Shown: positions 1 through 60,768 of the stretch, in pieces
Layout of the letters: each line of letters starts with the position of its first letter
Numbering within the stretch: position 1 is the first letter of the stretch
Assembly: GCA_946965045.2 (NCBI GenBank)
Contig: OX337237.1
Location: 2,232,001-2,296,000 of the forward strand
Reading direction: 5' to 3'
Length of the DNA stretch: 64,000 nt
Source of the DNA: Epithemia pelagica
Lineage: Eukaryota; Protista; Bacillariophyta
Made by a program: the position numbers and the translations under genes
Notes under the pieces: model-generated
Seen by the model: only the letters and a program-made list of their open reading frames with translations
Databases searched by the model: none
Told to the model about the DNA's origin: nothing

Positions 1-120
1 ACATCTAGTGCTGATGCCAACACATAGTGTTGTTTTTTCAGTGTATCTTCTCCCAAACAGCAACAAAAGGGAATAATCATCTTTGCATCCTGGAAGCTGG
101 AATAGAAAGCACACCCAATC

Positions 121-37332: not shown

Positions 37333-37789
37333 GATACTTTTTCGTTTTAGAGACAGTGAGTTTATGTGTATTCAAGATTGTTTTGATATAGAGATACGTT
37401 CGTGTTTCTTGGACCATGGGGGTATGACTTGACGGTGCGGGTCTGTGAGTGATGAGCGGTTATTACACGCGTTTGGGTCGCGTACATCGCATGCTTCAGC
37501 GGAGCCTCGCCGCGCTCGGTACTCTCTTCCCCGCGAAAGCGAGTCCTGCGTGCCAGTACCAATACCAAGGCCAACTCTGGCCGAAGTGTAATCCACGGTC
37601 GGTCGTTTCAAGAGCCGTCACGCGCGCTTTCTCCGAGTTGCCTCCATCTCACTCTGACTCGTGCTCACAAAACTTTACAAGAGAGTTCTGGAATAACCAC
37701 CGAGAGAAGCTGATTGTCATCCAGGAACGGGAAAGACAAAACAAATCAATGTCACCTTGCTTCTGTCAACAAAGGAAGTGAACCACTAA

Positions 37790-37971
37790 CTCCATACCAG
37801 ACTGTGTAGGTAGTTCGTCTCACATTTTTATACTACAGTAGGAATTTTTTGTACGACCGGGAAGTAGTTTCGTGCGAGTCGCGCGGTTTCCCTCTCGTGT
37901 GTGACACTTGTGTGACACTTTGTGACATGGCTTCCAGGAATTTCTCACTACCTACACAGCTTGATATGGAG
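37790..37971. mobile_element. MITE-like element A (182 bp, 24-bp TIR)
   Basis: CTCCATACCAGACTGTGTAGGTAG versus the reverse complement of the right end CTCCATATCAAGCTGTGTAGGTAG (3 mismatches). TAA on both flanks; absent from copy 2. Confidence 0.65.
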
Positions 37972-37982
37972 TAAGTTTACTA

Positions 37983-38152
37983 CTTCCCTGTGTCTGGCCG
38001 TCCTCTCGCGTCGGGCGCGCCCGGCTTGTCGGGAGAATGACTCGACGGGCAATTGTCTTGTCGGGCGTGCGCCCTCCTCGACCATTGCCCTCCTCGTCAT
38101 TCTACCCTCCGCGCCGGGCGGTCCCTCCTTGAAAGGACTCGACACCGGGAAG
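37983..38152. mobile_element. MITE-like element B (170 bp, GC-rich, 12-bp TIR, TA flanks)
   Basis: TA|CTTCCCTGTGTC ... GACACCGGGAAG|TA; absent from copy 2. Confidence 0.55.
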
Positions 38153-38216
38153 TATTAATACTACCTCGTGAGATCGTTTCGATTGGTGCAGAGACAATCA
38201 ATAAAGAAGAGCAAAG

Positions 38217-40075
38217 ATGAGACTCTTTCGTCCTCAGGGAAATCGAATACGGAGTCAGTTCGCATTCCTTCCTCCCATGGAATGGACCGGGCTGTATTCT
38301 CTCTGGATATGTTTCGCACTGTGGGGAACAAGAACGGTAACTGAGGCAGTCCAAGTTCTTCCTCGAGGTTGCGGTGGTTCCATTCACCATGTGCGCATTG
38401 CTGTGGGACCCGATCCTTCCACTTCCATGATTGTCAGTTTTGCCAGTATCTCCAGTCGTTTCGTAAAAGGAACCATTTCCCCCGTGGGAGGAGTCCGTCT
38501 GGGAATCTCTTCCGACGAATTGTCGACTGTGTATATGGAGGAGGACAAGGGCGGTCTTTCAGCCCGTTGCTACAACGTCACCACCTTGAAACGCGGATTG
38601 AGCAACGATGAAAGTAACCGTACTTCGACCGTGTATTGGTCTCCTTTTTACCACCATGTTCTGATTACCGGACTTGAGCCTTCAACTAAGTATTACTATC
38701 AGCCCGTCTTCCAAGCCAATCGAGAAGAATTTCAGAGAATCTACGGGTCAAGCCTTGCTTTGAACAGTCTCCGTAACACCGACGGCACAATTCAAGGAGA
38801 AACGAAACGACCGGTACCCTCGAAATACTCTCCTGCAAAGAATGGAACCATAGAAAAAGAGGGCTTCCGTGGTCGCACTCTTCGGCGTCAATTGCTTCGT
38901 TGGGGTCCGTACGATGGATCTGCAAGTGCATGTCCGTCAAAGGAGAAGATCCGTTCCTTTCAAACAGCCCCCTCTCCTTCTTCCTCGGTTTCAGCAACAT
39001 TTGCAGTACTGGGTGATTTGGGCCAATTTCCTCATTCCCAACTAACCATGGAGGGCGTGCTGCATTGGAAAGAAGACATTGATGCCGCCATTTTGGCTGG
39101 TGATATTGCCTACACCGGAGAGGACCACCGACGATGGGATACATTTTTGGACTTTCTGGACGATTACATGGCCTTTGAAGCTATACCAGTATGTTTTGTT
39201 CTTCTCATATTTTACCCGGCTGTGAACCATGTGCCGCTTCAACATGGTAAGTCTCACTCTTCCCGTTTTTCTCTTTCCAGCTCCAGATCTGTCCAGGAAA
39301 TCATGATATTGACAAGTACGAAACGTCCGATCAAATTTTCTTGGCGTACGAGACACGATTTCGTATGCCTCATGTGAAGCCTCCGCAACTGGGCACTTAT
39401 CAAGGTCCCGAGGGAAGACTCAACATGGAACAGCCTCCATACCCGCTGCCCTATGAGTACGGAAACTCATACTACTCCTGGAAATATGCTAGTGCTCACT
39501 TTATTATGGTTAATGCATACGCTTCCATGGATCCAGGATCCCAGCAACGGCATTTCATCGAAACTGAACTTCAACGTGTGAATCGCAACGTTACACCGTG
39601 GGTGATTGTCGTGATCCACACACCCCTTTATAACACTTTTGGTTTGCATCTGAAGGATCCACAAATTCTCGCGGCAAAGGAACATTTGGAACCACTGTTT
39701 GTCCAATATCGTGTCAATATTGTCTTTTCGGGTCATATTCATGCGTACTCTCGATCGCATGGCGTGACTTTCGACAAGCTTGATCCCAAGGGTCCAGTTC
39801 ACATCACTGTTGGTGCCGGTGGTCGAAAATGTGAAGCCCCCTTCCGAAATCGTACTGCCGAAGAATGGGTGGCTGTGCGCGATGCCACCATGTACGGCTT
39901 TGGCATGTTGCGAATTCACAACTCTACCATTGCCGAATGGGATTGGATTCACACGTCGGCCACGGACGATGATCGAAAGTACAATCAAGTCTCTGGGGCT
40001 CCGGAAGAGCATTTGGATCCGGGACGGCCAGATCATGTGTACATTGTCAACCAGTATTTTTTGCAACACGAGTGA
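38217..40075 (+). CDS. Purple acid phosphatase, copy 1; intron 39189-39280
   Basis: All five metal-ligand blocks are present: GDLG, GDIAY, GNHD (restored by splicing IP|LQICPGNHD), VVIH, GHIH. FN3-like N-domain and signal-like MEWTGLYSLWICFALWG. Confidence 0.92.
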
Positions 40076-40341
40076 ATATTCCCGCATGCTGCACGCCCTT
40101 TTTTCAGAACAAGTGAACAAACTTTTCAACGGCCATGAAGGGCTCATTAATCAAACTGTTGTATTCTGATTTGTCAAATCGACCATTCTGTCGAAACGAA
40201 ACCACAAGATAGTGGAATTATGCTCGAAGTAACGCTATTAAAGTCCCTCTTAGTACATTTACGCGTATGCGACTGGTTTATGAAGACTTCCGGTCTTCCG
40301 ACTTCCGATCGACAAACAACGGTCGAAAATTCGACTCCACT

Positions 40342-41246
40342 TCAGGAAGTTTTTACAACTGGTACTTCCGTGGTCTGCACAACGGGAAATTCGGATGCAG
40401 TTGAGAGGTCATTGTGACTGCTTGACGTTTTCGGGACATTCAGGTGCTTCTTAGCCTGCTGGTAGCGTTGCTTGGCTTCTTCCATTGCTACCATGGCTTG
40501 TTCCAACGATCCAGCGGTATTCTTCTCCTTCTCGTGTTCACGACTCTTCTTGCTACTGTGGTGGTGGCTGTGATGATGAGAATCACCGTCGTCGTGTTTC
40601 TTTTTGTGATGGCGGTGAGAGTGCTGTTCACCGTCTCGCTTATGGTGGCTGTCTTTATGATGTGATCGTTTCTCAGTACTACTTTTCGCTTCATGAAGTT
40701 CACCACTTCCATCATCGTCCAAACTTTCACTGACATCACGGCCGCCTTTTGACGTCTCATCCTTGGATATTTTGCTCGTTTTTGCAGCCCGCATACTTCG
40801 TTCGCTGTGTTGTCGATGTCCTCGGAGACTTCTCGTGCTCTGACTTCGATGATGTCTCATAAGTCTGAAACTGCTTTGACGAGGAAGACTAATGCCACCA
40901 TTCTGCGATGAGTTCTTGTCATGGCGGCTGGAACTAGCCTTGCTGTCATCGTCATCGTCTTTTCCGCCACCGAGGCTTTGGCTGCTATTCTGACGGGTCA
41001 AAAATGCACGTGTCTGTCGAAGATTAAGAGGTTTGCTGTTGTCTTCTTCACCGCCTCCTCCCCCACCGAGACTTTGACTGCTATTTTGACGTTTCAAAGA
41101 CGCACGTGTATGTCGACGATTTGTATGGTTGTCGTTACTGTCTCCGCCGCTACCAAGGTTGTGACAACTATTTTGACGGTTTAACATTGTGACCCCGTCA
41201 ACAAGGCGACCGCGTGCACGTCGTCGTGGATGCTGACTCTGTCTGG
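40342..41246 (-). pseudogene. 5'-truncated copy of the Ser/Arg/His-rich gene, fused in frame to retrotransposon RT
   Basis: Near-identical to the last ~300 codons of ORF 55481..57880. Identity stops at 41246, beyond which the same ORF continues into RT sequence. Confidence 0.85.
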
Positions 41247-42705
41247 TTGTTTTTCGTTTATCCAACAATTCTTGGACTTGTTTTGTCCAGCCGACCTTCT
41301 TCTCATACGGGAGGCGAAGAAGGAGTCGTCTGGTGTCAATGGTCCAGCCGAGAACACGTTGTTCTTCGACTGGGGCGCCCTCTGCTTTCAGTTTGTCATC
41401 TTCTAGCATTGCTTTGCGGGTGATGGGTTCGTCGTCGGCGAGAGGTCGAGTCATAAGATGGACAATCAACGGAACGATGCATGGGCAGCGATGAATGTTC
41501 TCTTCAGTGGCCAGGAACAGTTGGATCATGTCATCTAAATAACAGTCATGAAATCCGTGGGGATGAGGAGGAACCATGACGGCTAGTTCTTGTGCTTGTG
41601 CAATGGGAATGTCTTCGGATAGGAATTGGGGCGGGCCAATGCCTGACTGAAGTGGGGAGACACAACAATCAGGCGTCCATTCTTGGAGATCGGCAAGATC
41701 ATTGCAAAGATCTGTCCCGATTTCGGAAACGACGGAAAACTCGGCGGGGTTGGCGGAGGCTCCGAAAGTCAGTCGAAGGTTCAGATGGGCGAACAAGTTT
41801 GACGGGTCGATGGTGATATTCCTGGCGGCCACTTCGCCGTCGCCATGGATGCGACGATAGGCCGATGCCCAATCGAATTTACTCAACAAAATCTTCTCGG
41901 TGGGGTGGTGCCAGCGTAATACAACAATTTGATGAATGATGCGATCAATGCAATGGCCCATCACGAGGTCAATTAGCTGTTCCTGATCGATGAGGTCGTT
42001 TGTGGAGGGACAGAAACCGAGAGAGAAGGATTGGTCATGGGTCAAGCGGTCTTTGGGAATCAGGTCGCCGTGAGCGTCGATTCCCAACTGGTGAGCCACT
42101 CCCATCGGGCTGATACGACTATGTTTGATCGATTTTGCACAGCTAAATGTGATTGGGAGGGAGTAACCACGAGAGGCATCCTTTAGCAAGACTTTGGTCA
42201 GTGCCTCAGGATTCTTCTTTCCTGAGGCATGGTTTCCATACTCAAGGATTGCGTCGTTCTCAGCTCGCCGTGCGGTCTCATCTTCCACAGCTGTGAGGGG
42301 GTAGGAGACGCCGTGAGAGATAATGGACTTGAGGCGAGGCCAATAGGGATGGCCTGCCAGTAAGGGCTCCAAGACTCCGGCTGGCCGGAATTCGGATCCT
42401 GGGGAGATGACCGAGTATGGATAGGCGTCAAGGAGACGCTGCATGTCCATATCATATTCATCAATCAACCGTGAGTTGAATTCAGCGTTAGCGACAGCGA
42501 CTTCATCTGGATGAATGTCGTGGCGAAACGGGGAATCGTGTGGTGTATCTTGCTCAGTCTGGGAGATGGCAATGATGACATCCAACGATAGGGGATGGCT
42601 TTCTTGACGGAGTGCCGGAGGGAAGAGTCGGTTCGGGAAGATCTTGGGTACATCGTTCGGGAGGTAGGGCTTGGGATCATCATACTTGGGGAAAGGACGG
42701 GGCAA
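41247..42705 (-). CDS. Reverse transcriptase portion of the chimeric 787-aa ORF (40342..42705)
   Basis: Motif A (FDWASAYR), B (TFGASANP), C (YLDD) and D/E (VLGW) are followed immediately by host-derived RQSQHPRRR. Confidence 0.85.
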
Positions 42706-43371
42706 TAGTCTAAACTCACCTTATAGTTGAACATCCGCGTTTCGAGCATCTTGTAGTCGTTTCACATTCCGGCGGAGAGGGCGTCCCGAGAAGTCAGATC
42801 CTTCAATCGCAGATTCGCTTCCTGGAAGAGAATTCTGGATTTGTGAGGATAGATTTGGGGGAAAATGGTCGGTGGTCTTGGGGGTCGTGTCAAGGGTAAG
42901 GAAACTTGAAGGGCGGAGAGCCGAATCCGAAGGGGCTGGGATCAACGAAAGCGAATCGGAAGGGGATAAAGTCTTGGGGATAACTGGAGAAAGCGAAGCC
43001 GGCTGACTTGCATCAAAAAGTCGAATCTTGTTGAGAGATCCACAGTCCGTTGGAAAACGCACATGTGGAGTCGTCGTCAAAAGATTTGTCTTGGGGAGAA
43101 TTTGTCTATGGATCGCAGCAGCACAAGCATCTGGATGCCGTGTGTGGTTTTGAGATGGTTGATGGGGAAGGAAGGGATTTTCTGTTGAGGGAATGGATGG
43201 GATGTCATGGGATGACGGGGAAGCGAGAGGTGGAAGAAACGATGGAACTATTATCGGAGCAGATGAGTGAACTATGGGGAGACGATGGGAGAAGTCAACG
43301 GGTTGACTGTCGACGTTCGGTGGTCCAGGAAGGGGAGATGTGGAGGAAGTGACAATCAACCCTTCATGGCG

Positions 43372-46182
43372 TCAAGAACTCTCATACGCTGTGCGATAGA
43401 AGTTGTCCATCTCGGTCTTCTTGTTGTGTTTCGCTGGATCGTCGTGACAAAAGCTGCATTTTGTACCCTTCTTGCAAAATCCTTTTGAGAAGAGAATGTT
43501 GCAAAAAGGAACAGTCTTGCCGTCTTTCTCGATTAATGGCATGTTCTCCAAGATATGAGGAGGGAAGATCTTCGGATAGGACTTGTTCTTGGGTAAGCGC
43601 CAATTTGAGGGGGAAGCGAAAGTCGCAGCACTCTTGGGGAGTGAGGATTCCTGATTTTGCTTCTTGTTGGAACTGCTTGGGTCATCAGAGTTGGAAGATC
43701 GTTTCTTATTGCCTTGTTTTTGTTGTTGGGCATAAAATTTTGCTTGTAAGGCCGCAGGTAAGCCGCCTAAGGGAGCACCCAACTTGACATTGAAGATCAG
43801 CCAATTGACACGTTCTTCTAATTCATCGAAGGCAACGTCAGAGAGAGAAGAGGCTGAACTTAAAGATCCAACAAATTCTTGTATGGCTTCGTCGAGACCG
43901 AAAAGCATCTGACCGTAAAGGAATTCGTTGGCGGAACTCAACATTTTGGCCATGATTTTCGTACGATTGCCATGGAAAAAGTTCAAAAACTTGAGGATTT
44001 GATTGCATATCATGGAGGTGGGACCGCAAAGGCCTTTGGCGCAGGCCCAATACGAACGCAATTGTTTCTCAAACTCGTCTTCGGTACGTGGAAAGAACAG
44101 GTTGTGGTCCGAATAGAGTTGTTGCATATCTTTACTCTGTTTCATCTCGTTGAGATGACAGAGAGAGGCGTCGTGAATTTGTTGTCGTATATTCTTGTCT
44201 AACGTGTGTGAAGAGTCAATCCCTGGAATCGCGTACGGATCAAAAGAGAAAGGGCTGAAGCCTCCGGGAGAGGCTTCAGATCGCCAGCGCAAACCAAGGC
44301 GTTGGATCACCGTGCATTGGCCGAGAAGAATCGTGCACACGTTGTCCATGGGGTCGAAAACTTCTGCGACAAAAGACTCGAAAAAGGTTGCCGAGTTTTT
44401 CGATTTCCAAACTTTCTTCACAACATCTGGGAGATCGGTGGGAAGAGAGGTGAAAGATCTGTCAATAACTCCCAAGCGAAGTTGTTTTTGGGCTATCTGT
44501 GGCATATCTCGGAACATACTTTTTGATTCGGGTGAAGTAATGTCGTCTTCGTTCGAAATCTTCTTCTGGGAACCAACTTCACGGAGGCATTTCGAAATTA
44601 GAAACATCTCTGGGGAAACAAAATGCTCGATGCCTTCATCGTCAATCATACGAACACCATTGGTGGGACGAGGTGGGTCGTTTGAAGATGGAAAGGAACA
44701 ATCAACCTGGGGCGGAGAAGTTTCTTGAGGAGGGGTGGTTGTAGTTTCACTTGGATTGGGTGACGAGTCGGGGGACGGAATTATTTCGGGAAAGACTCGG
44801 TGGCGATGATCCAACAATGTTATGAATGCAGATTCGGTGTCCTTTGGGATGTTGGGAATGACGATGCGAGAAAGTTCAACTTGAGAGCGAGTGGTCATGA
44901 CCCAAAGAAAGCGAAACATGTGTTCAAGTGCAGAAAGAAAAGGAAAATCAATCTGCATGCCTTTGAGTTTCGTCTCCAGCGGCATATCGGGCGAGTGGGA
45001 CCACCAGTGCTTGAGGGTCAACTCATACAAGTTGGCAGCGATGTCTTCAAACGAAAAGGAAGAGTCAACTCGGGCTGGATTCATGTACTTGATCATCATT
45101 CCGGCAAAGGCAGGAGGAATGAGACAAAGGTTGGAGTAAGTGAATCGGTCTGATTCTTTGGCTTCAGAGGAGGGAACGGGGTTCATCTTCTTGAACTGAC
45201 TCCCATCGAAAAAGAAGCATGGGGTCGAATCTTTGCCTGGAGGCAAGTCAAGTTTTCCAACACATTCTTCGAGGATTGCCGAGAAGGATGGGACGTGCTT
45301 CAGGGTCTCTTCTTGGAGGAGAGATGAGATATCGTCGACGTCAATCTGGATGGGAGGCGCATCAAAGGAGGGACGATCAAGAGCGAAGAATTCGATCGAC
45401 GGGTTCACCAAAGTACCACAATCCACTGGACAACAAAGATTATGGAAAATCATGGGACGGCCGGAACGAGAGGATCCAAGAAAGGCCAACGAATTGGTCT
45501 TGATCTTAGCAGAGATCCAAACATGAAGTTCTTCAGGAGTCGATAGGCGGATGAAACTTGCTTGGAGCTGTGTCCAAAGGGAAAGGTCGCGAGCAAGAGA
45601 GATGTGAAAAGGAGTCACAAAGGAATCACACCAATCAACCGGGGCAATCGTTGCAACATTGTCTAATGCCTTGGGGAGAGTCTTGGCCGAAATCAGATGG
45701 AAGTCGTCAGCGAAGTAAAGTTCGAAACGACGAGCGACTTCAATATCGGACTTGGACAGAATGGAAGAAGGAGAGGAGCGATTCGAAGCGGTAGCTGTCG
45801 AAGGACTCTTGTCTCCTCCACCGCCAACAAGAGAAGAGAGAACGCCATCATTCGATTTGGCTGTACCACCCGTGGGGGAAGGAGGAGGCGGAGGAGGCGT
45901 ATCGTCAGAGACAGAGATCTTGGACTTGATCTGGTCGATCTTCTTCTTCTTGGCTTGGGAAGCGGCAACGAGAATCTCCTGGAGTTCAGAGTCCGAGAGG
46001 GCACTGTAATCCACATCCTCAAACAATCCACCATCAGACTTCGAGGCAAAGGCGGAGGGTTTCTGGTCCTGCGAATCATCGGGCTGAGAAACGACGGGCG
46101 GCGAACCTCCAGAGGCGGCAGACGAAAGGGGGATCGTCGGCGACTCCGTGTCGAAGAAAGGAACAGAATCCTTAAAGGTCAT
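43372..46182 (-). CDS. Retroelement ORF1 (gag-like) with C-terminal C-x8-C-x5-C-x3-H zinc finger
   Basis: 936-aa ORF containing CNILFSKGFCKKGTKCSFCH, directly upstream of and in frame with the RT. Confidence 0.7.
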   Translation of the reverse strand: MTFKDSVPFFDTESPTIPLSSAASGGSPPVVSQPDDSQDQKPSAFASKSDGGLFEDVDYSALSDSELQEILVAASQAKKKKIDQIKSKISVSDDTPPPPPPSPTGGTAKSNDGVLSSLVGGGGDKSPSTATASNRSSPSSILSKSDIEVARRFELYFADDFHLISAKTLPKALDNVATIAPVDWCDSFVTPFHISLARDLSLWTQLQASFIRLSTPEELHVWISAKIKTNSLAFLGSSRSGRPMIFHNLCCPVDCGTLVNPSIEFFALDRPSFDAPPIQIDVDDISSLLQEETLKHVPSFSAILEECVGKLDLPPGKDSTPCFFFDGSQFKKMNPVPSSEAKESDRFTYSNLCLIPPAFAGMMIKYMNPARVDSSFSFEDIAANLYELTLKHWWSHSPDMPLETKLKGMQIDFPFLSALEHMFRFLWVMTTRSQVELSRIVIPNIPKDTESAFITLLDHRHRVFPEIIPSPDSSPNPSETTTTPPQETSPPQVDCSFPSSNDPPRPTNGVRMIDDEGIEHFVSPEMFLISKCLREVGSQKKISNEDDITSPESKSMFRDMPQIAQKQLRLGVIDRSFTSLPTDLPDVVKKVWKSKNSATFFESFVAEVFDPMDNVCTILLGQCTVIQRLGLRWRSEASPGGFSPFSFDPYAIPGIDSSHTLDKNIRQQIHDASLCHLNEMKQSKDMQQLYSDHNLFFPRTEDEFEKQLRSYWACAKGLCGPTSMICNQILKFLNFFHGNRTKIMAKMLSSANEFLYGQMLFGLDEAIQEFVGSLSSASSLSDVAFDELEERVNWLIFNVKLGAPLGGLPAALQAKFYAQQQKQGNKKRSSNSDDPSSSNKKQNQESSLPKSAATFASPSNWRLPKNKSYPKIFPPHILENMPLIEKDGKTVPFCNILFSKGFCKKGTKCSFCHDDPAKHNKKTEMDNFYRTAYESS

Positions 46183-46459
46183 GATGAAAAGGCAAAGGTA
46201 GAGGCTGAAAGCAAAGTAAACTAGCTAAGATCGTTGCGATCGTCTTGAACTCGTCTTTAGGCCTGCAAGAATGCTGGAATCCAGAAGAGTGAGCTCTTCT
46301 CAAAACATCGGCACCTTTGCATTCGGTCATTCGAATCGTAGAGTCCGAGGGATCAAAATCGGATGCTCGCCTCGCGACGAGGCGGTGCAGTCGCACCTCG
46401 AATGTCAGTCGCCGAAGTCTGTCCAGCATCGGCCACGTCACTCCACATCAGTACAGACA

Positions 46460-46622
46460 TGCTAAAAGTTCGCTTATCAGAAAAATTATACACTCGTTAT
46501 ATGAAATCTACCCTGATCCACAGGTGGGAGTCTTACACAGCTCCTACCAAAAGCGGCCACATAGCCGGGGTAGTTTCGACACATTTGTCATGCATTGCCA
46601 AATATCGGCCACAATTTCAACA
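46460..46622 (-). repeat. 3' LTR of Copia
   Basis: tgctaaaag...tttcaaca, direct repeat of 53012-53174. Confidence 0.95.
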
Positions 46623-46763
46623 CTCCTCTCAAATCAACCTTGCCGTTGCAATGTTGAGTTGTATCCGCATTGTGGTCTTGTTCATTCCTAGGTGGTTCAC
46701 TCCATGGCTACATCCACCTCCATCCAACCAAGTGGTTCCGTTCATCCGTACTCCACTTATCAA

Positions 46764-49700
46764 TCATTCTGTACCAAAGATGTGATGGAGCAAATTTCGA
46801 ACGAAGCCTCGTCTCTTCTCCCCATTTGGTAAAACCTTCGTCAATAGGTCGGCTTCATTGTCATGAGTATTGATGTAGGTCGTTCTCCATTCATCCCTTG
46901 CCACTCCTTCTCGTACAAAATGATATGCAATGGACTGACTCTTCTTCTTCAGAGCTGAGTCCGGTATTGTTGTGTTCGCCAACACTGACTGATTGTCACC
47001 ATAGATGAGGCTTGGACCGTCGCACGGTATTCCAAGCATTCTCAACTTGTATCGTAGTCCTCGTAGATACTCGCAGCATTGTTTCATCGCTATAAACTCT
47101 GATCCAAAAGATGAGGACTCGATAGACATTTGTTTCTTGCTCCACCAATATACCAGTGCCGAATTTAGATAAACTAGGAACCCTGTTCGAGATCGTCTAG
47201 AAACGGTGTCAGAGGCATGATCAGCATCAACCTTGGCACGGACGACGAATCCCATTCCTCGTGGCTCTGGCATATTGGGAGGGAGCTCTTCCTTGCCATC
47301 GATATGGCCAAACTCTGAAGCCGTCCAATCCTTTTGCTCGAAATCGGCTTCATTCACAATGGGGTCGCTTGGATCGTACACGAGCTCCGCATTGTGGAAC
47401 TTCTTGAGGTATGCAAATACCTGCAAGACTTGTTGCATGTGTCCTTCCCTCGGTAGAGCAAGATGGGAGGACAAGACAGATACCTCCAGGCAAATGTCAA
47501 CCCTACCCAATTCCACGATCCACCTCAGGACACCGATGAGGGACTGGTAGTAGGAGGCATCCGATGGCGTTAACTCCGGGGAGACATCGAGTTCTGCCCG
47601 ATAACTTGTTTTCATCGGTGTATCTGCCTTGCTTGGCAGCGTCCATTTCTTATTTTCCCCTTTTACCAGGTGGTCCTCCACATTCCTTACAGCGGCTTGC
47701 ACATACTGTGAAGAGCTGAAGGCCCATGCCTCTACTCCATTCTCAAGCACGACCTTGCGTACTTTTCCACCAAGGTATATACTCGGAGGACCAACCGACT
47801 CCTCTTTCAACTCAAAATATCTACCAATCTCCTCACGTAGTATTTTCTCAGCCCTCTCGCCAATCGCCAGGGCATCGTCAACGTAGAGTAGAACATACTC
47901 GTAGTAGGGTGTGCCGTCGGACTTCTCCGCTGGTCGCATCCACACATCCGGATCCGCCGGACAGGATTGAAAACCAAGATGGCTCATGCAAGATCTCAGA
48001 TGATTTCTAAAGTCCTTGCCAGCGGTTTTCCCTCCATAGAGTGCCCGATGCACAAGCGCAACCTTGCCCACGTTTTCTATCCCAAACTCAGGGCCACATA
48101 TAATGTAGTCCCTCCTTGACGATGGCGCCTGCAGATAAGCATTTCGAATGTCTGCGGCGAATACATCCAGTCCGTTTAAGGCGGCGTACGTGAACGCTAT
48201 CCGCACGCTCTCTCTGGATACTACACCGGCGAAGGTCGACCCCTCAGGGTCCGGTGTCTTGTGTCCATCAAGGACCCACCTGGCCTTCCTCGTGAAATCC
48301 ATCTTCACGTCCCAGACCAGGTGTCCGGTTACCAGATGCCAACCATTTGGCGCCTTCTCTCCTGCGTCCAAGATCTCAAAGGCAATTCCGACATTATACA
48401 TCTCTTTTGCCAGAGCCTTCATCCAGAAATCATTTCCGTTCTTCTTGTCGAGTTCCTTCGCATGCTCAACACTTGTGGGTATTTCTATCCCATACTTGTG
48501 CCTTATCTGTCGGGCACGTGTCTTCAACGCCGATATGATGGCATCCCTCCTCCTTAGTGTCGACTTGGCCCACCAAAGAAAGGCTGGCTCATCATCCAAT
48601 CCGCGTGCCACCGCAAACTCGGCCGTTTCAACGGGGTATGACTCCTTCATGTCTGCCAATCGTTGCCAAGATTCGGATTCATCCTTCCACTTGACTAGCA
48701 GCCACCATCCTCTGGTGGTCTTTCTCATTCTCCGTCTGCCGCGTCTGTCGTAGACGTATTTGTCATGTTTCGGGACGGCCAGGGCTTCATCCTTCCTCCA
48801 GTCGACTATTCCTTCCATCAGTCGCAAATGGTTTCCATCGGTGTCGACCTCGGCCAACATGCCCTCAGCAATGACGTTGGCAGCATATTCCCTTACTTGT
48901 CCATCCATGAACTCAACCTCGTATAGAATGGAATTGCTGTATGGATCGTCGTGATACTTGCCAGTTGTTTTCCCATCAGCACCAAGGGCTCTCCTCTTAA
49001 CCACTCCCTTACTGATGTCGTCGCCAATTTGCATTTGGACTTCGGCGTTGATCATTCGGTCATAGGCAGGACATTGGTTCAGGAGCTTGCCCGTGCTGTT
49101 GACGGTGTCTTCTATGTCCGGAGTTGTAAATTGAGGTTGTTCATCGTCCTCATACGGATCATAAAATTTGTCGTCGTCGTTGGAAGGAGGTGGTTGTATG
49201 GAGGTGCCATGCCTCCTCTCGATCAAAGCTGTGAAAGCTTCACGCTTGGATCGTTCGCTGGCACTGTGCAACTCGGCAGTGTGTAGGGGTCGGACAGACC
49301 GACGTGGGACAACGTTGCCATTTGCTTTGAGCACCCACTGTGCCATGGCGTTGCCCTCCCCTCGGGCAGGTCCCAAAACCCTCCCCAAGACTTCCTGGTT
49401 GTGGGGAAATTTGGCTGTGTGTTCTCGGAAATAACACCATTCATACCACGCAAATTGCCCAATGCTAGAAATGTCTCCATCGACGCCCAAGGTTGCAGTG
49501 TGTGGGTTCGTCCCACGGACTGTGATGTAGTCACGAGCAGTGAGGTTATAAATCCTCACTCTCCTCTCCAGACAAAAATCCCAAAACACAAGGGGTGAAT
49601 TGGTTTCTCGCATATCCTTGCGAACGGCCTCTTTGGTCAGCTTGATATACAGCTCGGCCTTGTTCGCCCACGGTGTCCCTTCCTCGAGAGCACGGAGAGT

Positions 49701-51341
49701 GGTTCCTATGTCGTTGAGGAACACTCGCATGTCAGCACTTATCTGTTCTTTTGACATATCACACACAATAGCATCTGGCGCCCCAATTTCCTTGGCAAAC
49801 ATCTTAACTGCCATGAGCACCTCGGATTTACGTTTCATTGGTACCACATGCATGAAACCTTTGTCAGTGACGAATAGCTGACAGCACGTGTTACCTCTCG
49901 AGGACTTGCCCCCTTTCTTGGTAGCAAAGAAGGTGTCCATATAAAAATATTCCTCGATACGGCGATATCGCAACATCCGATCGTTGGTCCCATAATTTTG
50001 AGACAAGGTTGGGTTGGTCGGTCGTTGACCATGCTGGGTCGTAATTTCGATCGTCCTTTTGGCATCATCATGGCTGATACGCCAGACCTTGGACAAGTGT
50101 TCAGCATCGATGCCACGCGACTTTCCAGCTTGCACCCCAGAAACAAAGAATTGATCCCAATCCATTTCGTCAATTTGTTCCAGGTCGATGTCCTCTTCCT
50201 CCTCACTATCTTTATGGATATCTGCATCGCTGTCGTCGTCGTCGACCGTCTCCACAAGATATTCGGAGGCCTCTGCCACCGTTGTCGCACCAATGGTCAT
50301 GGCCTCATGTCCATGCACCATCCTTTCCTCCATTCTGAGAGCCATGAGTGACTCCACAAGGACTGACGACACATTAGACAGATGGAGACTCACGTCATCA
50401 CATGGTTCAATCTTGGCATCTCCTCTCTTCTCTTCCATGTGGTATTGCCAATGGTGGTTTCGGGCACATCCCTTATCCACTATAAAGGCTTCCATTGATG
50501 ACACTCGATAAGCTTTATCATTTTCTCCGTCTGGTAGGTCCTCGATCATAACCCTTACTTGGTCTTTCTTTTCCTTGATATTTCCTTCCCAGTCCATGAT
50601 GCTAGCCTCGTTTTGCTCATATGCGTCTGAGTGAGGGTTCCATTGGTTCGGTGTTAGGACATATACATCATGTCCGGCCAGCAGATCGTCCTCAGTTGGC
50701 ATATTGGTTGAGAAATAAGAGAAGACTCCCCATAGATTTAGAGGGATCTTGAATCCAGTCGTTGGAAAGATTATTGCATGGTCGTCCGTCGTTGGGTCGT
50801 CCGTGTGGATCTTGGCTCGTTCGTTGACCTTGATCCCAGCTTCTCGCAACACGAACGGAGGGATGAGATTGTTGGCCATTGCCACCACCCGAATAGCATT
50901 CAGAATGACTAACAAGAAGGTCTTCCCACTGTAGGGACAATCGTAGCGTACAATTGCATCAACCAATTCCGCCTCCATAGACTTGTATTGCGGAGTGAAC
51001 GGACTGACGTCGACCTTTTTTCCAGAGTTGTTTATTACATACGCATGCCGTCCGACGACGGGCATGTTTGCATGGCTGTCCAGTTCGGTGCGGTGACCAC
51101 CAACATGATCTTCCATGTCGGTCATTTCTTCATCATTGCTTGCCGTTGCAGCCGCCACTGCAGCGAAATAACGATTAGGAATTTGAAATTTAGACTTGCA
51201 CATGCATTCGCATTTGCCTGGGTCCCCAAATTTAGACTTGCACATGCATTCGCATTTGCCTGGGTCCCACTGTTTGACATCCGGCTGCAATACCTCACCT
51301 CCTCTCAATGATGAGGAAATGATAGGTATGGCCGGACCCCG
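46764..51341 (-). CDS. pol: Copia pol polyprotein (protease, integrase, RT, RNase H), uninterrupted
   Basis: ELDSHAN (protease). YMDTFF, IVCDMSKEQ and NKAELYI (integrase). KARWVLDGH, DIRNAYL, RALYG and LYVDD (RT). DADHA, SSFGSE, GDNQSV and EADLLTK (RNase H). Same frame as gag after a single TGA. Confidence 0.95.
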   Translation of the reverse strand, partial: RGPAIPIISSSLRGGEVLQPDVKQWDPGKCECMCKSKFGDPGKCECMCKSKFQIPNRYFAAVAAATASNDEEMTDMEDHVGGHRTELDSHANMPVVGRHAYVINNSGKKVDVSPFTPQYKSMEAELVDAIVRYDCPYSGKTFLLVILNAIRVVAMANNLIPPFVLREAGIKVNERAKIHTDDPTTDDHAIIFPTTGFKIPLNLWGVFSYFSTNMPTEDDLLAGHDVYVLTPNQWNPHSDAYEQNEASIMDWEGNIKEKKDQVRVMIEDLPDGENDKAYRVSSMEAFIVDKGCARNHHWQYHMEEKRGDAKIEPCDDVSLHLSNVSSVLVESLMALRMEERMVHGHEAMTIGATTVAEASEYLVETVDDDDSDADIHKDSEEEEDIDLEQIDEMDWDQFFVSGVQAGKSRGIDAEHLSKVWRISHDDAKRTIEITTQHGQRPTNPTLSQNYGTNDRMLRYRRIEEYFYMDTFFATKKGGKSSRGNTCCQLFVTDKGFMHVVPMKRKSEVLMAVKMFAKEIGAPDAIVCDMSKEQISADMRVFLNDIGTTLRALEEGTPWANKAELYIKLTKEAVRKDMRETNSPLVFWDFCLERRVRIYNLTARDYITVRGTNPHTATLGVDGDISSIGQFAWYEWCYFREHTAKFPHNQEVLGRVLGPARGEGNAMAQWVLKANGNVVPRRSVRPLHTAELHSASERSKREAFTALIERRHGTSIQPPPSNDDDKFYDPYEDDEQPQFTTPDIEDTVNSTGKLLNQCPAYDRMINAEVQMQIGDDISKGVVKRRALGADGKTTGKYHDDPYSNSILYEVEFMDGQVREYAANVIAEGMLAEVDTDGNHLRLMEGIVDWRKDEALAVPKHDKYVYDRRGRRRMRKTTRGWWLLVKWKDESESWQRLADMKESYPVETAEFAVARGLDDEPAFLWWAKSTLRRRDAIISALKTRARQIRHKYGIEIPTSVEHAKELDKKNGNDFWMKALAKEMYNVGIAFEILDAGEKAPNGWHLVTGHLVWDVKMDFTRKARWVLDGHKTPDPEGSTFAGVVSRESVRIAFTYAALNGLDVFAADIRNAYLQAPSSRRDYIICGPEFGIENVGKVALVHRALYGGKTAGKDFRNHLRSCMSHLGFQSCPADPDVWMRPAEKSDGTPYYEYVLLYVDDALAIGERAEKILREEIGRYFELKEESVGPPSIYLGGKVRKVVLENGVEAWAFSSSQYVQAAVRNVEDHLVKGENKKWTLPSKADTPMKTSYRAELDVSPELTPSDASYYQSLIGVLRWIVELGRVDICLEVSVLSSHLALPREGHMQQVLQVFAYLKKFHNAELVYDPSDPIVNEADFEQKDWTASEFGHIDGKEELPPNMPEPRGMGFVVRAKVDADHASDTVSRRSRTGFLVYLNSALVYWWSKKQMSIESSSFGSEFIAMKQCCEYLRGLRYKLRMLGIPCDGPSLIYGDNQSVLANTTIPDSALKKKSQSIAYHFVREGVARDEWRTTYINTHDNEADLLTKVLPNGEKRRGFVRNLLHHIFGTE
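51186..51268 (-). repeat. 42-bp in-frame tandem duplication encoding (W/G)DPGKCECMCKSKF twice
   Basis: aaatttagacttgcacatgcattcgcatttgcctgggtccc starts at 51186 and at 51228. Confidence 0.95.
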
Positions 51342-52964
51342 TCAGGCTTGCTTCGCCTGTTTAAGGATCGCCTGGAGGGTGGTAGATTTCTTAGGTGGTT
51401 GTGGATTGGCGGTAGAGGGTGGCGGAGGGAGAGCCAACTGTGATTGCATGGTGGCTTGAACGATAGAGGCAATTTGAGCCTGCAAATCATTGGCCTGTTC
51501 CTCCTCCTCTGCCTTTTGAGCAAACTTCTTGAGCTCGTTTGCCACTACAGATGCCAATTGGCGTTTAGCCCACTTGGCTTTGCCATTCTTCCCACTATTG
51601 GGTTTTCCGTCGCCATTCTTCTTCTTCGGCTTTGACTCGCGCCAGAGTCGAAGTTCATCCTTTTGGGCATTGGTGAGTTTGTCGTACTCAGCAGGGGTGT
51701 GGTACCGAAGATGCACACCTGTTTTCCCAATGCTTGTTTTCTTTGGTTGTGTAGTGGTTGAGCCTACCTCGGCCGTCGTCGGTGCTTGTTCATCATCTGC
51801 CTCGACGGACGAAATCTGAGCTGCACTTCGTTTATTGTTACTCGCTGCGGCCCTCTTCTTGGCCACCGGATCATATGGTAGCAGATGGGCAGCGGCAGAT
51901 TCAAAATTGTTTCGCATGCCATTAGGGTCATTGTCCGTTCGGACACTTGCCATGGCTGCTTGGAGTCCGGCATCAGAACATTGGATGCCTTCCAATAGAT
52001 AGCCAACACGTGTGTGCTCGTTGGGCAGCTGGTAAGATACGTGTTCAGCACATTGCTGCATAGAAACATAAGCATTTCGATGCTGTGCGATGAAACCCTC
52101 GAGTGGAAAACTGCTTTGTCCTTTCCATACACGTTGGTGGAGGAGATCGTCTTGTCGTTTGATCTCTGCCTCCCACTTATCCTGACCAGCATACTGACTT
52201 GTAAGTGCCATCCAGGCACCTCGACCATCTTTTCCTCGCTGATAGGGCTTGATGGATGCCGCATACGTCGTCCCTCTAGTTGCTTCCTCGAGGTGGTAGT
52301 ATACTGCCGCATTATCTTCACGGTACAATTCATGGTCATGGGATGCACGCGCCACAAGTTCAACTTCAATTGAGCCATACTCCGTCGAATGGGGCTTATT
52401 GGCTGCTTGTGCTGGCGGTACAACTGGAACATCCACCTCTTGTCTGGTGACATAAGCTAGAGGGATTGTTCTCACTCCAATCACACGATTGAGATAATCT
52501 TGAAAGGCTTCGGTCCATTTCATGATTGGCAGCGCCTTGCTGATCTTGGGAGTCTCGGGTTCATCCCCTTCCTTCCGTGACTTCAATGCCTTCCACTGTG
52601 ACTCAAAATTCTTCATGACCTGGGTCCAACGCATGTTGTTTGCTGTCATGTCACGCCCAACAGTATTGTAGTACCTGACCAGTTCGCATGCCACAGATAG
52701 GCGATGCTGGGATTTGGCACCAAAAACAAAGGATGGTGTAGGGATTGTTGCTCCAGCGGCCGCACCAGGGGTTGGGTCTGGAATCCTTCCTCCCGGTTTC
52801 CTGAGATTGTCCGCTACTTGCTGGAGCGTATCCTTATCGAAGTCGGCTAGGTCGGAAAGTGTCGTGATTCCCTCAACTTGAAGTTGAGTTACAGTAGCCT
52901 GTGGGATGCCCATTTGGTCGGCATCGCGAAAGAAAGATGTCGTTTGGGCAGCAGTTAGTACCAT
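51342..52964 (-). CDS. gag: Copia gag
   Basis: ATG at 52964 (MVLTAAQTT...). Contains GVRTIPLAYV, DGRGAW and LRYHTPAEY motifs; no CCHC knuckle seen. Ends in TGA at 51344-51342. Confidence 0.88.
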   Translation of the reverse strand: MVLTAAQTTSFFRDADQMGIPQATVTQLQVEGITTLSDLADFDKDTLQQVADNLRKPGGRIPDPTPGAAAGATIPTPSFVFGAKSQHRLSVACELVRYYNTVGRDMTANNMRWTQVMKNFESQWKALKSRKEGDEPETPKISKALPIMKWTEAFQDYLNRVIGVRTIPLAYVTRQEVDVPVVPPAQAANKPHSTEYGSIEVELVARASHDHELYREDNAAVYYHLEEATRGTTYAASIKPYQRGKDGRGAWMALTSQYAGQDKWEAEIKRQDDLLHQRVWKGQSSFPLEGFIAQHRNAYVSMQQCAEHVSYQLPNEHTRVGYLLEGIQCSDAGLQAAMASVRTDNDPNGMRNNFESAAAHLLPYDPVAKKRAAASNNKRSAAQISSVEADDEQAPTTAEVGSTTTQPKKTSIGKTGVHLRYHTPAEYDKLTNAQKDELRLWRESKPKKKNGDGKPNSGKNGKAKWAKRQLASVVANELKKFAQKAEEEEQANDLQAQIASIVQATMQSQLALPPPPSTANPQPPKKSTTLQAILKQAKQA

Positions 52965-53011
52965 GGTGATGTAGTTCACTCGAAAAATCGGAACGAATGG
53001 GTCTGATAAAC

Positions 53012-53174
53012 TGCTAAAAGTTCGCTTATTAGAAAAATTATACACTCGTTATATGAAATCTACCCTGATCCACAGGTGGGAAATTTACACAGCTCCTACC
53101 AAAATCGGCCACATAGCCGGGGTAGTTTCGACACATTTGTCATGCATTGCCAAATATCGGCCACAATTTCAACA
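53012..53174 (-). repeat. 5' LTR of Copia
   Basis: Direct repeat of 46460-46622, followed on the - strand by GTTTATCAGACCCA (candidate PBS). Confidence 0.95.
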
Positions 53175-53179
53175 GACAA

Positions 53180-56100
53180 GACTCGTGGTCACAAAACTAT
53201 ACAAGAGAGTTCTGGAATAGAAGCTGATTGTCATCCAGGAACGGTAAAGACAAAACAAATCAATGTCACCTTGCTTCTGTCAACAAAGGAAGTGAACCAC
53301 TACCTCGTGAGATCGTTTCGATTGGTGCAGAGACAATCAATACAGAAGAGCAAAGATGAGACTCTTTCGTCCGCAGGGAAATCGAATACGGAGCCAGTTC
53401 GCATTCCTTCCTCCGATGGAATGGACCGGGCTGTATTGTCTATGGATATGTTTCGCTCTGTGGGGAACAAGAACGGTAACTGAGGCAGTCCAAGTGCTTC
53501 CTCGAGGTTGCGGTGGTTCCATTCACCATGTGCGCATTGCTGTGGGACCCGATCCTTCCACTTCCATGATTGTCAGTTTTGCCAGTATCTCCAGTCGTTT
53601 CGTAAAAGGTACCATTTTCCCCGTGGGAGGAGTCCGTCTGGGAATCTCTTCCGACGAATTGTCGACTGTGTATATGGAGGAGGACAAGGGCGGTCTTTCA
53701 GCCCGTTGCTACAACGTCACCACCTTGAAACGCGGATTGAGCAACGATGAAAGTAACCGTACTTCGACCGTGTATTGGTCTCCTTTTTACCACCATGTTC
53801 TCATTACCGGACTTGAGCCTTCAACTAAGTATTACTATCAGCCCGTCTTCCAAGCCAATCGAGAAGAATTTCAGAGAATCTACGGGTCAAGCCTTGCTTT
53901 GAACAGTCTCCGTAACACCGACGGCACAATTCAAGGAGAAACGAAACGACCGGTACCCTCGAAATACTCTCCTGCAAAGAATGGAACCATAGAAAAAGAG
54001 GGCTTCCGTGGTCGCACTCTTCGGCGTCAATTGCTTCGTTGGGGTCCGTACGATGGATCTGCAAGTGCATGTCCGTCAAAGGAGAAGATCCGTTCCTTTC
54101 AAACAGCCCCCTCTCCTTCTTCCTCGGTTTCAGCAACATTTGCAGTACTGGGTGATTTGGGCCAATTTCCTCATTCCCAACTAACCATGGAGGGCGTGCT
54201 GCATTGGAAAGAAGACATTGATGCCGCCATTTTGGCTGGTGATATTGCCTACACCGGAGAGGACCACCGACGATGGGATACATTTTTGGACTTTCTGGAC
54301 GATTACATGGCCTTTGAAGCTATACCAGTATGTTTTGTTCTTCTCATATTTTACCCGGCTGTGAACCATGTGCCGCTTCAACATGGTAAGTCTCACTCTT
54401 CCCGTTTTTCTCTTTCCAGCTCCAGATCTGTCCAGGAAATCATGATATTGACAAGTACGAAACGTCCGATCAAATTTTCTTGGCGTACGAGACACGATTT
54501 CGTATGCCTCATGTGAAGCCTCCGCAACTGGGCACTTATCAAGGTCCCGAGGGAAGACTCAACACGGCACAGCCTCCATACCCGCTGCCCTATGAGTACG
54601 GAAACTCATACTACTCCTGGAAATATGCTAGTGCTCACTTTATTATGGTTAATGCATACGCTTCCATGGATCCAGGATCCCAGCAACGGCATTTCATCGA
54701 AACTGAACTTCAACGTGTGAATCGCAACGTTACACCGTGGGTGATTGTCGTGATCCACACACCCCTTTATAACACTTTTGGTTTGCATCTGAACGATCCA
54801 CAAATTCTCGCGGCAAAGGAACATTTGGAACCACTGTTTGTCCAATATCGTGTCAATATTGTCTTTTCGGGTCATATTCATGCGTACTCTCGATCGCATG
54901 GCGTGACTTTCGACAAGCTTGATCCCAAGGGTCCAGTTCACATCACTGTTGGTGCCGGTGGTCGAAAATGTGAAGCCCCCTTCCGAAATCGTACTGCCGA
55001 AGAATGGGTGGCTGTGCGCGATGCCACCATGTACGGCTTTGGCATGTTGCGAATTCACAACTCTACCATTGCCGAATGGGATTGGATTCACACGTCGGCC
55101 ACGGACGATGATCGAAAGTACAATCAAGTCTCTGGGGCTCCGGAAGAGCATTTGGATCCGGGACGGCCAGATCATGTGTACATTGTCAACCAGTATTTTT
55201 GGCAACACGAGTGAATATTCCCGCATGCTGCACGCCCTTTTTTCAGAACAAGTGAACAAACTTTTCAACGGCCATGCAGGGCTCATTAATCAAACTGTTG
55301 TATTCTGATTTGTCAAATCGACCATTCTGTCGAAACGAAACCACAAGATAGTGGAATTATGCTCGAAGTAACGCTATTAAAGTCCCTCTTAGTACATTTA
55401 CGCGTATGCGACTGGTTTATGAAGACTTCCGGTCTTCCGACTTCCGATCGACAAACAGCGGTCGAAAATTCGACTCCACTTCAGGAAGTTTTTACAACTG
55501 GTATTTCCGTGGTCTGCACAACGGGAAATTCGGATGCAGTTGAGAGGTCATTGTGACTGCTTGACGTTTTCGGGACATTCAGGTGCTTCTTAGCCTGCTG
55601 GTAGCGTTGCTTGGCTTCTTCCATTGCTACCTTGGCTTGTTCCAACGATCCAGCGGTATTCTTCTCCTTCTCGTGTTCACGACTCTTCTTGCTACTGTGG
55701 TGGTGGCTGTGATGATGAGAATCACCGTCGTCGTGTTTCTTTTTGTGATGGCGGTGAGAGTGCTGTTCACCGTCTCGCTTATGGTGGCTGTCTTTATGAT
55801 GTGATCGTTTCTCAGTAGTACTTTTCGCTTCATGAAGTTCACCACTTCCATCATCGTCCAAACTTTCACTGACATCACGGCCGCCTTTTGACGTCTCATC
55901 CTTGGATATTTTGCTCGTTTTTGCAGCCCGCATACTTCGTTCGCTGTGTTGTCGATGTCCTCGGAGACTTCTCGTGCTCTGACTTCGATGATGTCTCATA
56001 AGTCTGAAACTGCTTTGACGAGGAAGACTAATGCCACCGTTCTGCGATGAGTTCTTGTCATGGCGGCTGGAACTAGCCTTGCTGTCATCGTCATCGTCTT

Positions 56101-56385
56101 TTCCGCCACCGAGGCTTTGGCTGCTATTCTGACGGGTCAAAAATGCACGTGTCTGTCGAAGATTAAGAGGTTTGCTGTTGTCTTCTTCACCGCCTCCTCC
56201 CCCACCGAGACTTTGACTGCTATTTTGACGTTTCAAAAACGCACGTGTATGTCGACGATTTGTATGGTTGTCGTTACTGTCTCCGCCGCTACCAAGGTTG
56301 TGACAACTATTTTGACGGTTTAACATTGTGACCCCGTCAACAAGGCGACCGCGTGCACGTCGTCGTGGATGCTGACTCTGTCTGG
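53180..56385 (+). repeat. Segmental direct repeat, copy 2
   Basis: See copy 1. It starts 5 bp from the Copia 5' LTR end and continues into the intact low-complexity gene. Confidence 0.95.
53356..55214 (+). CDS. Purple acid phosphatase, copy 2; intron 54328-54419
   Basis: Near-identical to copy 1 with all ligand blocks intact. Amino-acid differences seen: YS/YC, IS/IF, ME/TA, K/N, L/W. Confidence 0.92.
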
Positions 56386-59188: not shown

Positions 59189-60768
59189 TCACATCATCTC
59201 CGAAAATCTAACCAAAGCTTCCACCGATGCCTTTGCATCGGTGTATCGCTCCACCATGGTCATTGATGGTAAGATTCCTCGACCTCTCAAATGCTTTCTC
59301 CATCGATTGTTTGCCTCTAACACTTCTGTCGGTATCCCCCGATTCTGCGCCTCTGTTGTTGCGCCTCTTCTCAACGATCGTCGGACACTGTATGCTTCTT
59401 CAATCTTTGTTGTGTCCGAGATCAACTGAGGAAATCGGTGTTGGATTCGCTTCCACAGATCGTGAAACAACACATCCAAGTCACCCACCGAAGCTCTCGC
59501 AATTTGTCCTTTACGCTTCTTTTTTACCCGAAACAACGGGCCCGTGGTCACTTGGACTGCGTCCCAACTCCTGATGGCTCTTTCAAACCACACTCGCACT
59601 TCAATCCCAGAGCTTGTCTTGTCTGCCAAGAGATGAATATATATTCTGAATGTTCCGTTGGTTTGCTTGAAGCGACCCGCGAGTGCCAATGGTACGTGTT
59701 TCTTGCGAGGGTACTCGAGTCCTTCCTCCCAATATTTTCTCTTAAACCGATGTCGATCTGGGGAATTTCTTCTCCCCTCAAACCTGCTACGAAGCCAGCC
59801 ACAATCAACGCTCCTGTCAAAGCTACCTCTCTTTTGCGCACGCCTTGCAATCCACCTCGCCATTCATCCTCCAAGATGGAGAGTCCTGCCTTGACTTCGT
59901 CCAACGTTGTCGCCTGGTCTGGAATCCAGACATCACCCATCCTCCGATGACAACCAGTCATGAAGCGTTTATACCAGTGGGAGTTTGTCGGGCTCTCGCT
60001 AAAGAACAAGCCGCCTCTCTCCCCATAACCAACGGTCGCCAAACCTGTTCCCCCCGGAAGGGTGTGGTAAAAATTTGACACAGCCGATCGCACCTTCCGA
60101 GCTGTCTCGAACTGAATGCGACGAGCGTTGCGGCCCGGGTTCATTGTCTTCATGAGCATAAGGCAGGCTACATTGAGTCCTTGTTCGTTTCCGATGGGGC
60201 ATGGGCCTCTTTGCGGCAAAGGCTCTTCCAAACCCATTGCCTCACCAGTCTCGACGAGTCCCTTCACCTCCAGCCAATTTTTCTCTACCGTCGTCCTCTC
60301 ACGTGACCAAAACGCACCCAAGATCGCTCTTCTGATACAGAGCAGCAGTAGTTTATCCGCTTCTTTCTGCTCATTCGGGAATCGTCCCTGCAAGTTGAAG
60401 AAGCTGCATTCGTCGCACTGGAAGGTCACCATCAAATCATCACCAATCCGCGCCTCCTGAAAACGCATCTCGTCGTCAGCCATCTCGCCGTGCAGCTCGG
60501 TATCCAACAACGCATCATCCAAGTCACCTGCCTTGTATACAGGGAACTTGTCCTCTGCCAGTTGACAGTAACACCTTGCATGCCATATACCACAACACGT
60601 TCTACTCGTCCCCCTTGTACTCCCAAAGTTGGAGCAAACAATCCCGGACAGCGGTTGGACCGGATGTCCACAGTTCTTGCAATTCCCCGTCCACTTTGTC
60701 CAATAGCGTCTTTTTTTGTTTGACCTGCCAAGGTTGACTGTAAAGAAAGGGGCAAACAAAAGCAACAA
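59189..60768 (-). pseudogene. Tyrosine recombinase, frameshifted near 59740
   Basis: ORF 59548..60768 (up to GLRGEEIPQIDIG) and ORF 59189..59863 (from RKYWEEG to RSLRRGAT...ERY) overlap in different frames. The 5' end overlaps the RT-RH-MT ORF. Confidence 0.82.

Follow-up and report, generated by a model that had tools for sequence, protein, structure and literature searches.

A reading frame of 787 codons on the minus strand of a 64,000-nucleotide (nt) stretch of the diatom Epithemia pelagica (GenBank assembly GCA_946965045.2, contig OX337237.1, forward-strand positions 2,232,001 to 2,296,000; hereafter the window) was found to join in frame the reverse transcriptase (RT) part of a 3'-truncated retrotransposon, here named X, to the duplicated tail of a neighbouring host gene. 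Most probably this frame is an incidental scar of a structural rearrangement, in which end-joining met the correct frame by chance, and not a gene. The truncated element is bracketed by two direct copies of a host segment (host copies A1 and A2) of 3.2-3.6 kb with 99.3% identity. Since host copy A1 is genomic DNA which carries a whole second gene, the fusion is to be regarded as a by-product of the rearrangement.

The chimeric reading frame and its join

The frame had been reported in a preliminary description, made by a model from the letters of the DNA and a list of open reading frames (ORFs). It is present in this list, and the physical description given there, an RT piece fused in frame to a duplicated host tail, is right. 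The first 486 codons are retroelement pol, codon 487 straddles 41247/41246 and the frame is kept across the join (junction peptide ...DKRKTT/RQSQHP...). Upstream of the join the window matches full-length element copies on contig C18 with 99.2% identity over 5,213 bp, and this match ends at 41246. At this point the element reads ...AAAACAA/CTTTCG, the host gene ...CAGCATT/CCAGACAG and the chimera ...AAAACAA/CCAGACAG. Alignment to the full-length element, which had been proposed for measuring microhomology, hence gave one shared nt (C).

Residues 488-787 of the chimera are residues 500-799 of the 799-residue ORF at 55481-57880, except for four substitutions, and the stop codon and the downstream DNA also copy the end of this parent gene. 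The earlier claim of a switch to the last 300 residues of the neighbour, with stop and 3' flank, was confirmed by self-comparison of the window, in which 38160-41246 corresponds to 53299-56385 (99.29%, 3,087 bp) and 37656-37792 to 53180-53306. At their left end the two copies differ by a 10-bp indel and by an insert of 375 bp, located at 37793-38167 in host copy A1 only. The host tail is basic (isoelectric point (pI) 10.1) and rich in Ser, His, Lys and Arg, as the reported basic, His-rich character implies. This is simply the composition of the parent protein. The features of the locus are listed in Table 1.

Table 1 Features of the rearranged locus (positions within the window)
Feature	Position	Strand	Remarks
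Chimeric ORF, 787 codons	40342-42705	minus	TTG start is mechanical, the first ATG being codon 86; stop codon 40342-40344
Element-derived part of the chimera	41247-42705	minus	corresponds to residues 219-705 of full-length pol; comprises an N-terminal region, fingers and palm of the RT (with motif A Asp and YLDD) and, of the thumb, only the first helix
Breakpoint	41246-41247	minus	element ...AAAACAA/C to host C/CAGACAG; shared C is 41246; codon 487 (ACC, Thr) across the join
Duplicated last 300 codons and stop of host gene 55481-57880	40342-41246	minus	five coding differences to the parent copy
N-terminal 212 codons of ORF2 (pol)	42721-43359	minus	no longer continuous with the RT part, owing to the private TAA
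Private nonsense codon TAA(-G) in pol	42721-42723	minus	TTA (Leu) in the four sister copies
X ORF1, 936 residues, gag-like, intact	43372-46182	minus	C-terminal CCCH finger; ends with TGA-C (43372-43374), in frame with ORF2
X 5' terminal repeat A1 (nt 2-244)	46217-46459	minus	sister copies have A repeats with 100% identity to it
Ty1/Copia long terminal repeat (LTR) retrotransposon	46460-53174	minus	LTRs of 163 bp with 5 differing bases; gag 51342-53045, pol 46764-51308
First 5 nt of X (TTGTC)	53175-53179	minus	parted from the rest by Copia; X thus borders with its exact 5' end on host copy A2 (53180)
Host copy A1	37656-41246		host-gene tail (minus) and complete purple acid phosphatase gene (plus, 38217-40075); runs on into the unique left flank
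Host copy A2	53180-56385		continues into the remainder of the intact host gene; carries the other phosphatase gene at 53356-55214
Parent gene, 799 residues, intact	55481-57880	minus	low-complexity; occurs once in the genome if the duplicated tail is disregarded

Retrotransposon X and the position of the break

Five near-identical copies of X were compared, namely the window copy, two copies on C18 and one each on ctg1330 (L026) and ctg1147 (L025). The full-length reference was the C18 copy L018 (C18:883000-892500). A complete X spans about 8.06 kb and consists of repeat A1, a gag-like ORF1 (936 residues in L018, with a C-terminal CCCH finger), an RT/RNase H ORF2 (1,122 residues, behind a TGA in the same frame as ORF1), a recombinase ORF3 (452 residues) and the repeats B1-A2-B2. 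The split direct repeats of L018 comprise two A units of 244 nt (100% identical) and two B units of 178 nt (97%), in the order A1...B1-A2-B2.

For residues 225-1000 of ORF2 an AlphaFold (AF2) model was obtained with a predicted local distance difference test (pLDDT) score of 90 and a predicted template modelling (pTM) score of 0.90. It matched the RTs of foamy virus, cauliflower mosaic virus (CaMV), Moloney murine leukaemia virus (MMLV) and Ty3 with a Foldseek probability of 1.00, and VIA Z values of 14.5-15.5 were found against the RTs of MMLV and human immunodeficiency virus (HIV). It is by predicted structure only that X is recognized as encoding an RT. Pfam scans of the chimeric ORF, its RT part, the full-length ORF2, ORF3 and the host protein yielded nothing usable (no RVT_1), and a sequence profile search of the PDB with the element RT gave a low-complexity match only. 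The motif A Asp and Y-x-D-D are invariant in the X family. In L018 the RNase H is covered by the alignment of HIV-1 RT 1-554, which extends through model residue 724, and D594, E639, D667 and D719 are invariant. The ORF3 model of L018 (pLDDT 80) had Cre recombinase as best Foldseek match (E 2.6e-7, probability 1.00); residues R187, R336, W359 and Y367 are invariant or nearly so.

Ngaro elements are defined as members of the order DIRS with the layout A1-[ORFs]-B1A2B2, in which a tyrosine recombinase (YR) replaces the integrase and a methyltransferase is missing (PMC8547959, PMC4157794). From its predicted folds and the split-repeat layout, X is a Ngaro-type YR retrotransposon: the full copies agree with this type in the gag-like ORF1, the RT/RNase H in ORF2, the Cre-like YR in ORF3 and the split repeats. 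No Pfam match to a methyltransferase was obtained for ORF2 and ORF3, which is weak evidence since Pfam misses the RT too. The ORF2 model is filled by RT and RNase H, and the 224 N-terminal and 122 C-terminal residues outside the model read as low-complexity sequence rich in Ser, Pro and Thr. In contrast to the type, RT and YR of X are too divergent for Pfam, ORF2 of the window copy ends after 705 codons with only ORF1 and repeat A1 kept besides, and truncated copies of X have flanking host duplications. Such flanking duplications are not expected from YR integration.

The window copy comprises only the first 5,214 nt of X. To this copy belongs the RT part of the chimera, and the site of its truncation was located with the ORF2 model. 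Fingers and palm of MMLV RT (40-278) align to model residues 97-458 (VIA Z 14.5, root-mean-square deviation 3.2-3.5). With the thumb included, MMLV 40-364 and HIV-1 1-318 align to model residues 98-585, and HIV-1 1-554 aligns to 98-724 (VIA). The first strand of RNase H is formed by model residues 589-596 with the invariant catalytic Asp594. The last element-derived residue of the chimera is model residue 481, equivalent to residue 705 of ORF2. In the predicted structure the break is thus inside the RT thumb, about 105 residues ahead of RNase H, and not exactly where RNase H should begin, as had been stated. What remains in the chimera are the fingers, the palm and a single helix of the thumb (461-477). 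The linker is lost along with RNase H, the recombinase (ORF3) and the thumb helices 482-495 and 502-531. The claim of a complete RT core with YLDD holds for the catalytic motifs, as the motif A Asp and YLDD are intact, but not for the thumb, most of which is gone.

At least 80 RT matches of the family are present in the genome (60.5 Mb, 23 contigs). Its relatives in diatoms and metagenomes number in the hundreds, and not one of them is annotated. The transposon families of the window match diatom proteins from Cyclotella, Fragilaria and Epithemia. In the literature definitions of Ngaro elements were found, but nothing on diatom elements of the X family or on truncated copies with duplications. 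The X family is unannotated, yet canonical in fold and layout. Both its RT and its YR (ORF2 and ORF3 of L018; window 60602-62779) are missed by Pfam despite their canonical predicted folds. Automated annotation will miss such elements, and a very large RT and recombinase family of diatoms and ocean metagenomes is invisible to Pfam.

Origin of the duplication and of the fusion

Read along the minus strand, the locus is composed of the 5' part of the host gene, host copy A2, TTGTC, the Copia element, X nt 2-5,214, host copy A1 and the left flank. The event joined a [host-A-X 5' part] segment to an [A-left flank] segment. A target duplication of 3.6 kb has this topology, and so, equally, has a tandem duplication filled with X. 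Before the arrival of Copia, the exact 5' terminus of X abutted host position 53180, and the broken 3' end is joined to the interior of the host gene. Both joints are blunt or share 1 nt of microhomology, which points to end-joining and not to the action of a recombinase. Two routes can be envisaged. A 3'-incomplete linear copy may have been captured at staggered or unequal breaks, or a homologue with X may have been joined unequally to a homologue without X. The 0.7% divergence between host copies A1 and A2 would suit the second route and would equally suit divergence since an older event. The host break lies in a coding exon, so that the pol frame runs into the host frame, the correct frame being a 1-in-3 outcome. 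The caution of the preliminary description, that an in-frame join has this chance, was apt. Later changes were the insertion of Copia 5 nt into the end of X, the insertion of the 375-bp repeat into host copy A1 and the TAA in pol just upstream of the RT.

It was also considered whether [A + X 5' part] had been duplicated in tandem, starting from a complete insertion. This was ruled out, since the site behind host copy A1 is empty and holds no remnant of X.

The Copia element is a later, simple insertion into X. Its target-site duplication of 4 bp, TGTC (46456-46459 and 53175-53178), lies within the first 5 nt of X, of which nt 2-5 are repeated; thus Copia came after X. A related Copia element on C18 also has a 4-bp duplication (CCTC).

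A chimeric retrocopy was examined as a different origin of the fusion. Here, RT would have begun by copying the host mRNA and then gone over to the element RNA as template, and the hybrid cDNA would have been integrated. The sense strands of element and host are indeed joined in the same orientation with minimal microhomology. However, the host side extends over 3.6 kb, from the host-gene 3' flank through the phosphatase gene on the opposite strand and intergenic DNA into a unique helicase gene on the left, and no poly(A) is present. The duplicated genomic DNA reaches beyond any processed transcript, which rules out a template-switch retrocopy; we assign it practically no probability.

It was further considered whether the arrangement is an artefact of assembly, in which a transposon-bearing and an empty haplotype of a heterozygous locus were placed one behind the other. 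Duplication and RT-host junction would then be absent from every chromosome. The 0.7% difference and the indels between host copies A1 and A2 resemble the 0.3-1.5% between allelic contigs elsewhere in the assembly. Furthermore, the assembly in the European Nucleotide Archive (ENA) contains alternative haplotigs for other loci, with identities of 98.5-99.7% and hemizygous X insertions, and has no separate allele recorded for this locus. Nevertheless, the join connects unrelated sequences with 1 nt in common inside a contig of 2.06 Mb without Ns, for which an overlap assembler needs spanning reads. If a haplotype bubble had been resolved wrongly, the breaks would lie at homologous boundaries and not inside the RT. 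The sister copy on ctg1330, moreover, has the same design of truncated element and duplication with a repeat of 16 bp and cannot be a haplotype mis-join. We therefore consider an artefact unlikely.

Transposon-host fusion genes such as SETMAR have been described, and chimeric genes can be born at duplication breakpoints. The locus resembles these in that a transposon enzyme domain was brought in frame with a host coding sequence via a duplication which left the parent gene intact. It differs from genes such as SETMAR by the truncated enzyme domain, the upstream stop and its occurrence in one assembly. Capture of retroelement cDNA at chromosome breaks is known as well, e.g. for Ty1 cDNA in yeast, and so are tandem duplications with filler DNA. 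In common with these, a partial retroelement is located between two host copies with joints that are blunt or share 1 nt. In the present case a YR retrotransposon is involved, its 5' portion is kept with the exact 5' terminus, and the duplications comprise 16 bp and about 3.6 kb. That a chimeric ORF arises through a duplication associated with a transposon is an event of a known kind. As a candidate new gene the frame matters little. Its value is that of a clean, dated example, in which a whole purple acid phosphatase gene was duplicated, the parent gene stayed intact and a spare tail came to lie in frame behind a transposon coding sequence.

Coding capacity of the fusion

The element frame from 46182 to 41248 is interrupted by two stops, TGA-C at 43372-43374 and TAA-G at 42721-42723. 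The TGA-C at the end of ORF1 is the same in all five copies (window, L018, L019, L025 and L026) and is probably the normal gag/pol boundary of X, judged from this conservation, which is consistent with programmed read-through. The TAA-G has a strong context, is private to the window copy and cuts pol after 212 codons. It is located five codons ahead of the nominal TTG start. The single ORF described before thus begins at a mechanical TTG just past a nonsense codon that truncates pol. The first ATG, at codon 86, would be about 3.9 kb into a transcript from repeat A1 and behind the 936-codon ORF1. No start usable without an upstream block was found, as the TTG is mechanical and the ATG at codon 86 is preceded by TAA-G and the ORF1 TGA. 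Nor is there a complete functional domain; fingers and palm are present, but the thumb does not go beyond its first helix, and there is no RNase H. Most likely the fusion is not translated, and its catalytic function is crippled.

The preliminary description had proposed a newborn chimeric gene instead. In a gene of this kind an RT lacking RNase H with a basic, disordered tail would be transcribed from the 5' repeat or an internal promoter and translated, and it might act, for example, by binding nucleic acids or by dominant-negative interference with the X family. Such a gene would agree with the open frame of 787 codons in which motif A and YLDD are intact, with the basic tail of pI 10.1 that is followed by the 3' flank of the host gene, and with the few non-synonymous private changes in the RT part. 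The 5' repeat and ORF1 are intact upstream, where the 5' region of the element itself had correctly been placed. These features are opposed by the private TAA-G and the ORF1 TGA, the late first ATG, an RT without most of the thumb and without RNase H, the origin in a rearrangement, and the 4:1 ratio of non-synonymous to synonymous changes between the tail and its parent. An in-frame join is, in addition, expected in one of three cases. The fusion protein forms a cluster of one, and the cluster look-ups revealed no fusion homologue in another strain or species; the protein is found in one assembly only. A functional newborn gene is, overall, very unlikely.

Selection on the fusion was addressed by comparing the substitutions in the five X copies, with copies of 74-76% identity as outgroups. 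The window copy has 27 private sites relative to the four sister copies. The changes counted in the RT part and in the tail are too few for a decision, and they give no convincing signal of selection for the fusion. In the duplicated tail, four non-synonymous changes and one synonymous change separate the copy from its parent.

Several observations weigh against the interpretation as a chance scar. Private substitutions in the RT part of the window copy are synonymous in six cases and non-synonymous in one, which could hint at constraint, with tiny numbers. ORF1 and repeat A1 are intact, so that transcription of the fragment is possible. The truncated copies with flanking duplications examined were two in number. 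The sole other record of the locus (ENA ERZ21939226, ctg1359l, 2.06 Mb) is 100% identical over 22 kb including both host copies and hence stems from the same assembly. Regarding the substitutions, polarisation with the outgroups showed two of the seven RT-part changes to be ancestral and one to be ambiguous, which leaves about 3-4 synonymous changes to one non-synonymous. In comparison with two copies only, the ratio had been 8:1; it shrank once two more copies and the outgroups were added. Divergence of an active lineage prior to the insertion accounts equally well for the synonymous skew.

Sister copies and a possible route of insertion

Two of the five near-identical X copies are 3'-truncated with an intact 5' end and are flanked by host duplications, of 16 bp on ctg1330 and about 3.6 kb in the window. 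The ctg1330 copy (L026:4577-11127) is hemizygous, has the exact 5' end and is truncated at about nt 6,525. It is flanked on both sides by the 16-mer GTATTGTAGGTCAGTG. The allelic site in the reference genome (L030:6064-6074) is empty and differs by small tandem repeats (TATTG, TAGGTC). The full-length copy on ctg1147 has no flanking duplication. The ctg1330 case supports a biological process behind the arrangement in the window.

Tentatively, these copies suggest a recombinase-independent route for Ngaro elements, although we hold it to be rather doubtful. Linear copies with the exact 5' end and a missing 3' part would be end-joined at staggered or unequal breaks, with target duplications of variable size. 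If this is true, a single insertion of this sort could yield both a second copy of an entire gene and an RT-host fusion in frame, which might serve as raw material for new genes. The pattern of truncated copies bears on the question of how YR retrotransposons, with their poorly known replication intermediates, reach the chromosome.

The full-length X copy on ctg1147 (L025:3682-12439) resides inside an element of about 715 bp with terminal inverted repeats of about 31 bp (TACTCCCTCCTGCTCGAAATTAT...). The allelic site (L027:~1503) lacks this element, the end sequence of which is found at numerous other sites of the genome. Among the five near-identical copies of X, the window copy and a copy on C18 (L017/L014) each have a Copia-type element 0-22 bp from the 5' end, in the same orientation. 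A targeting preference of Copia for the 5' ends of X may exist.

Host genes and further observations

For the 799-residue parent protein neither a Pfam family nor a homologue among 5.8 billion proteins was found; the latter is weak evidence, as the search was word-limited and the query is of low complexity. The parent gene looks like an orphan gene. In the phosphatases of host copies A1 and A2 the domains Pur_ac_phosph_N, Metallophos and Metallophos_C were identified.

The 5' end of the phosphatase gene contains, within 276 bp (38204-38479 and 53343-53618, respectively), ten of the 22 differences between host copies A1 and A2. The spectrum is unusual, with transversions at 15 of the 22 sites.

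The 375-bp repeat at 37793-38167 is situated just upstream of the phosphatase start codon, with the flanks ACTAACTC and ACTACCTC. At least 60 copies with 94-99% identity are present in the genome, some of them as head-to-tail dimers. The repeat is probably a young non-autonomous element.

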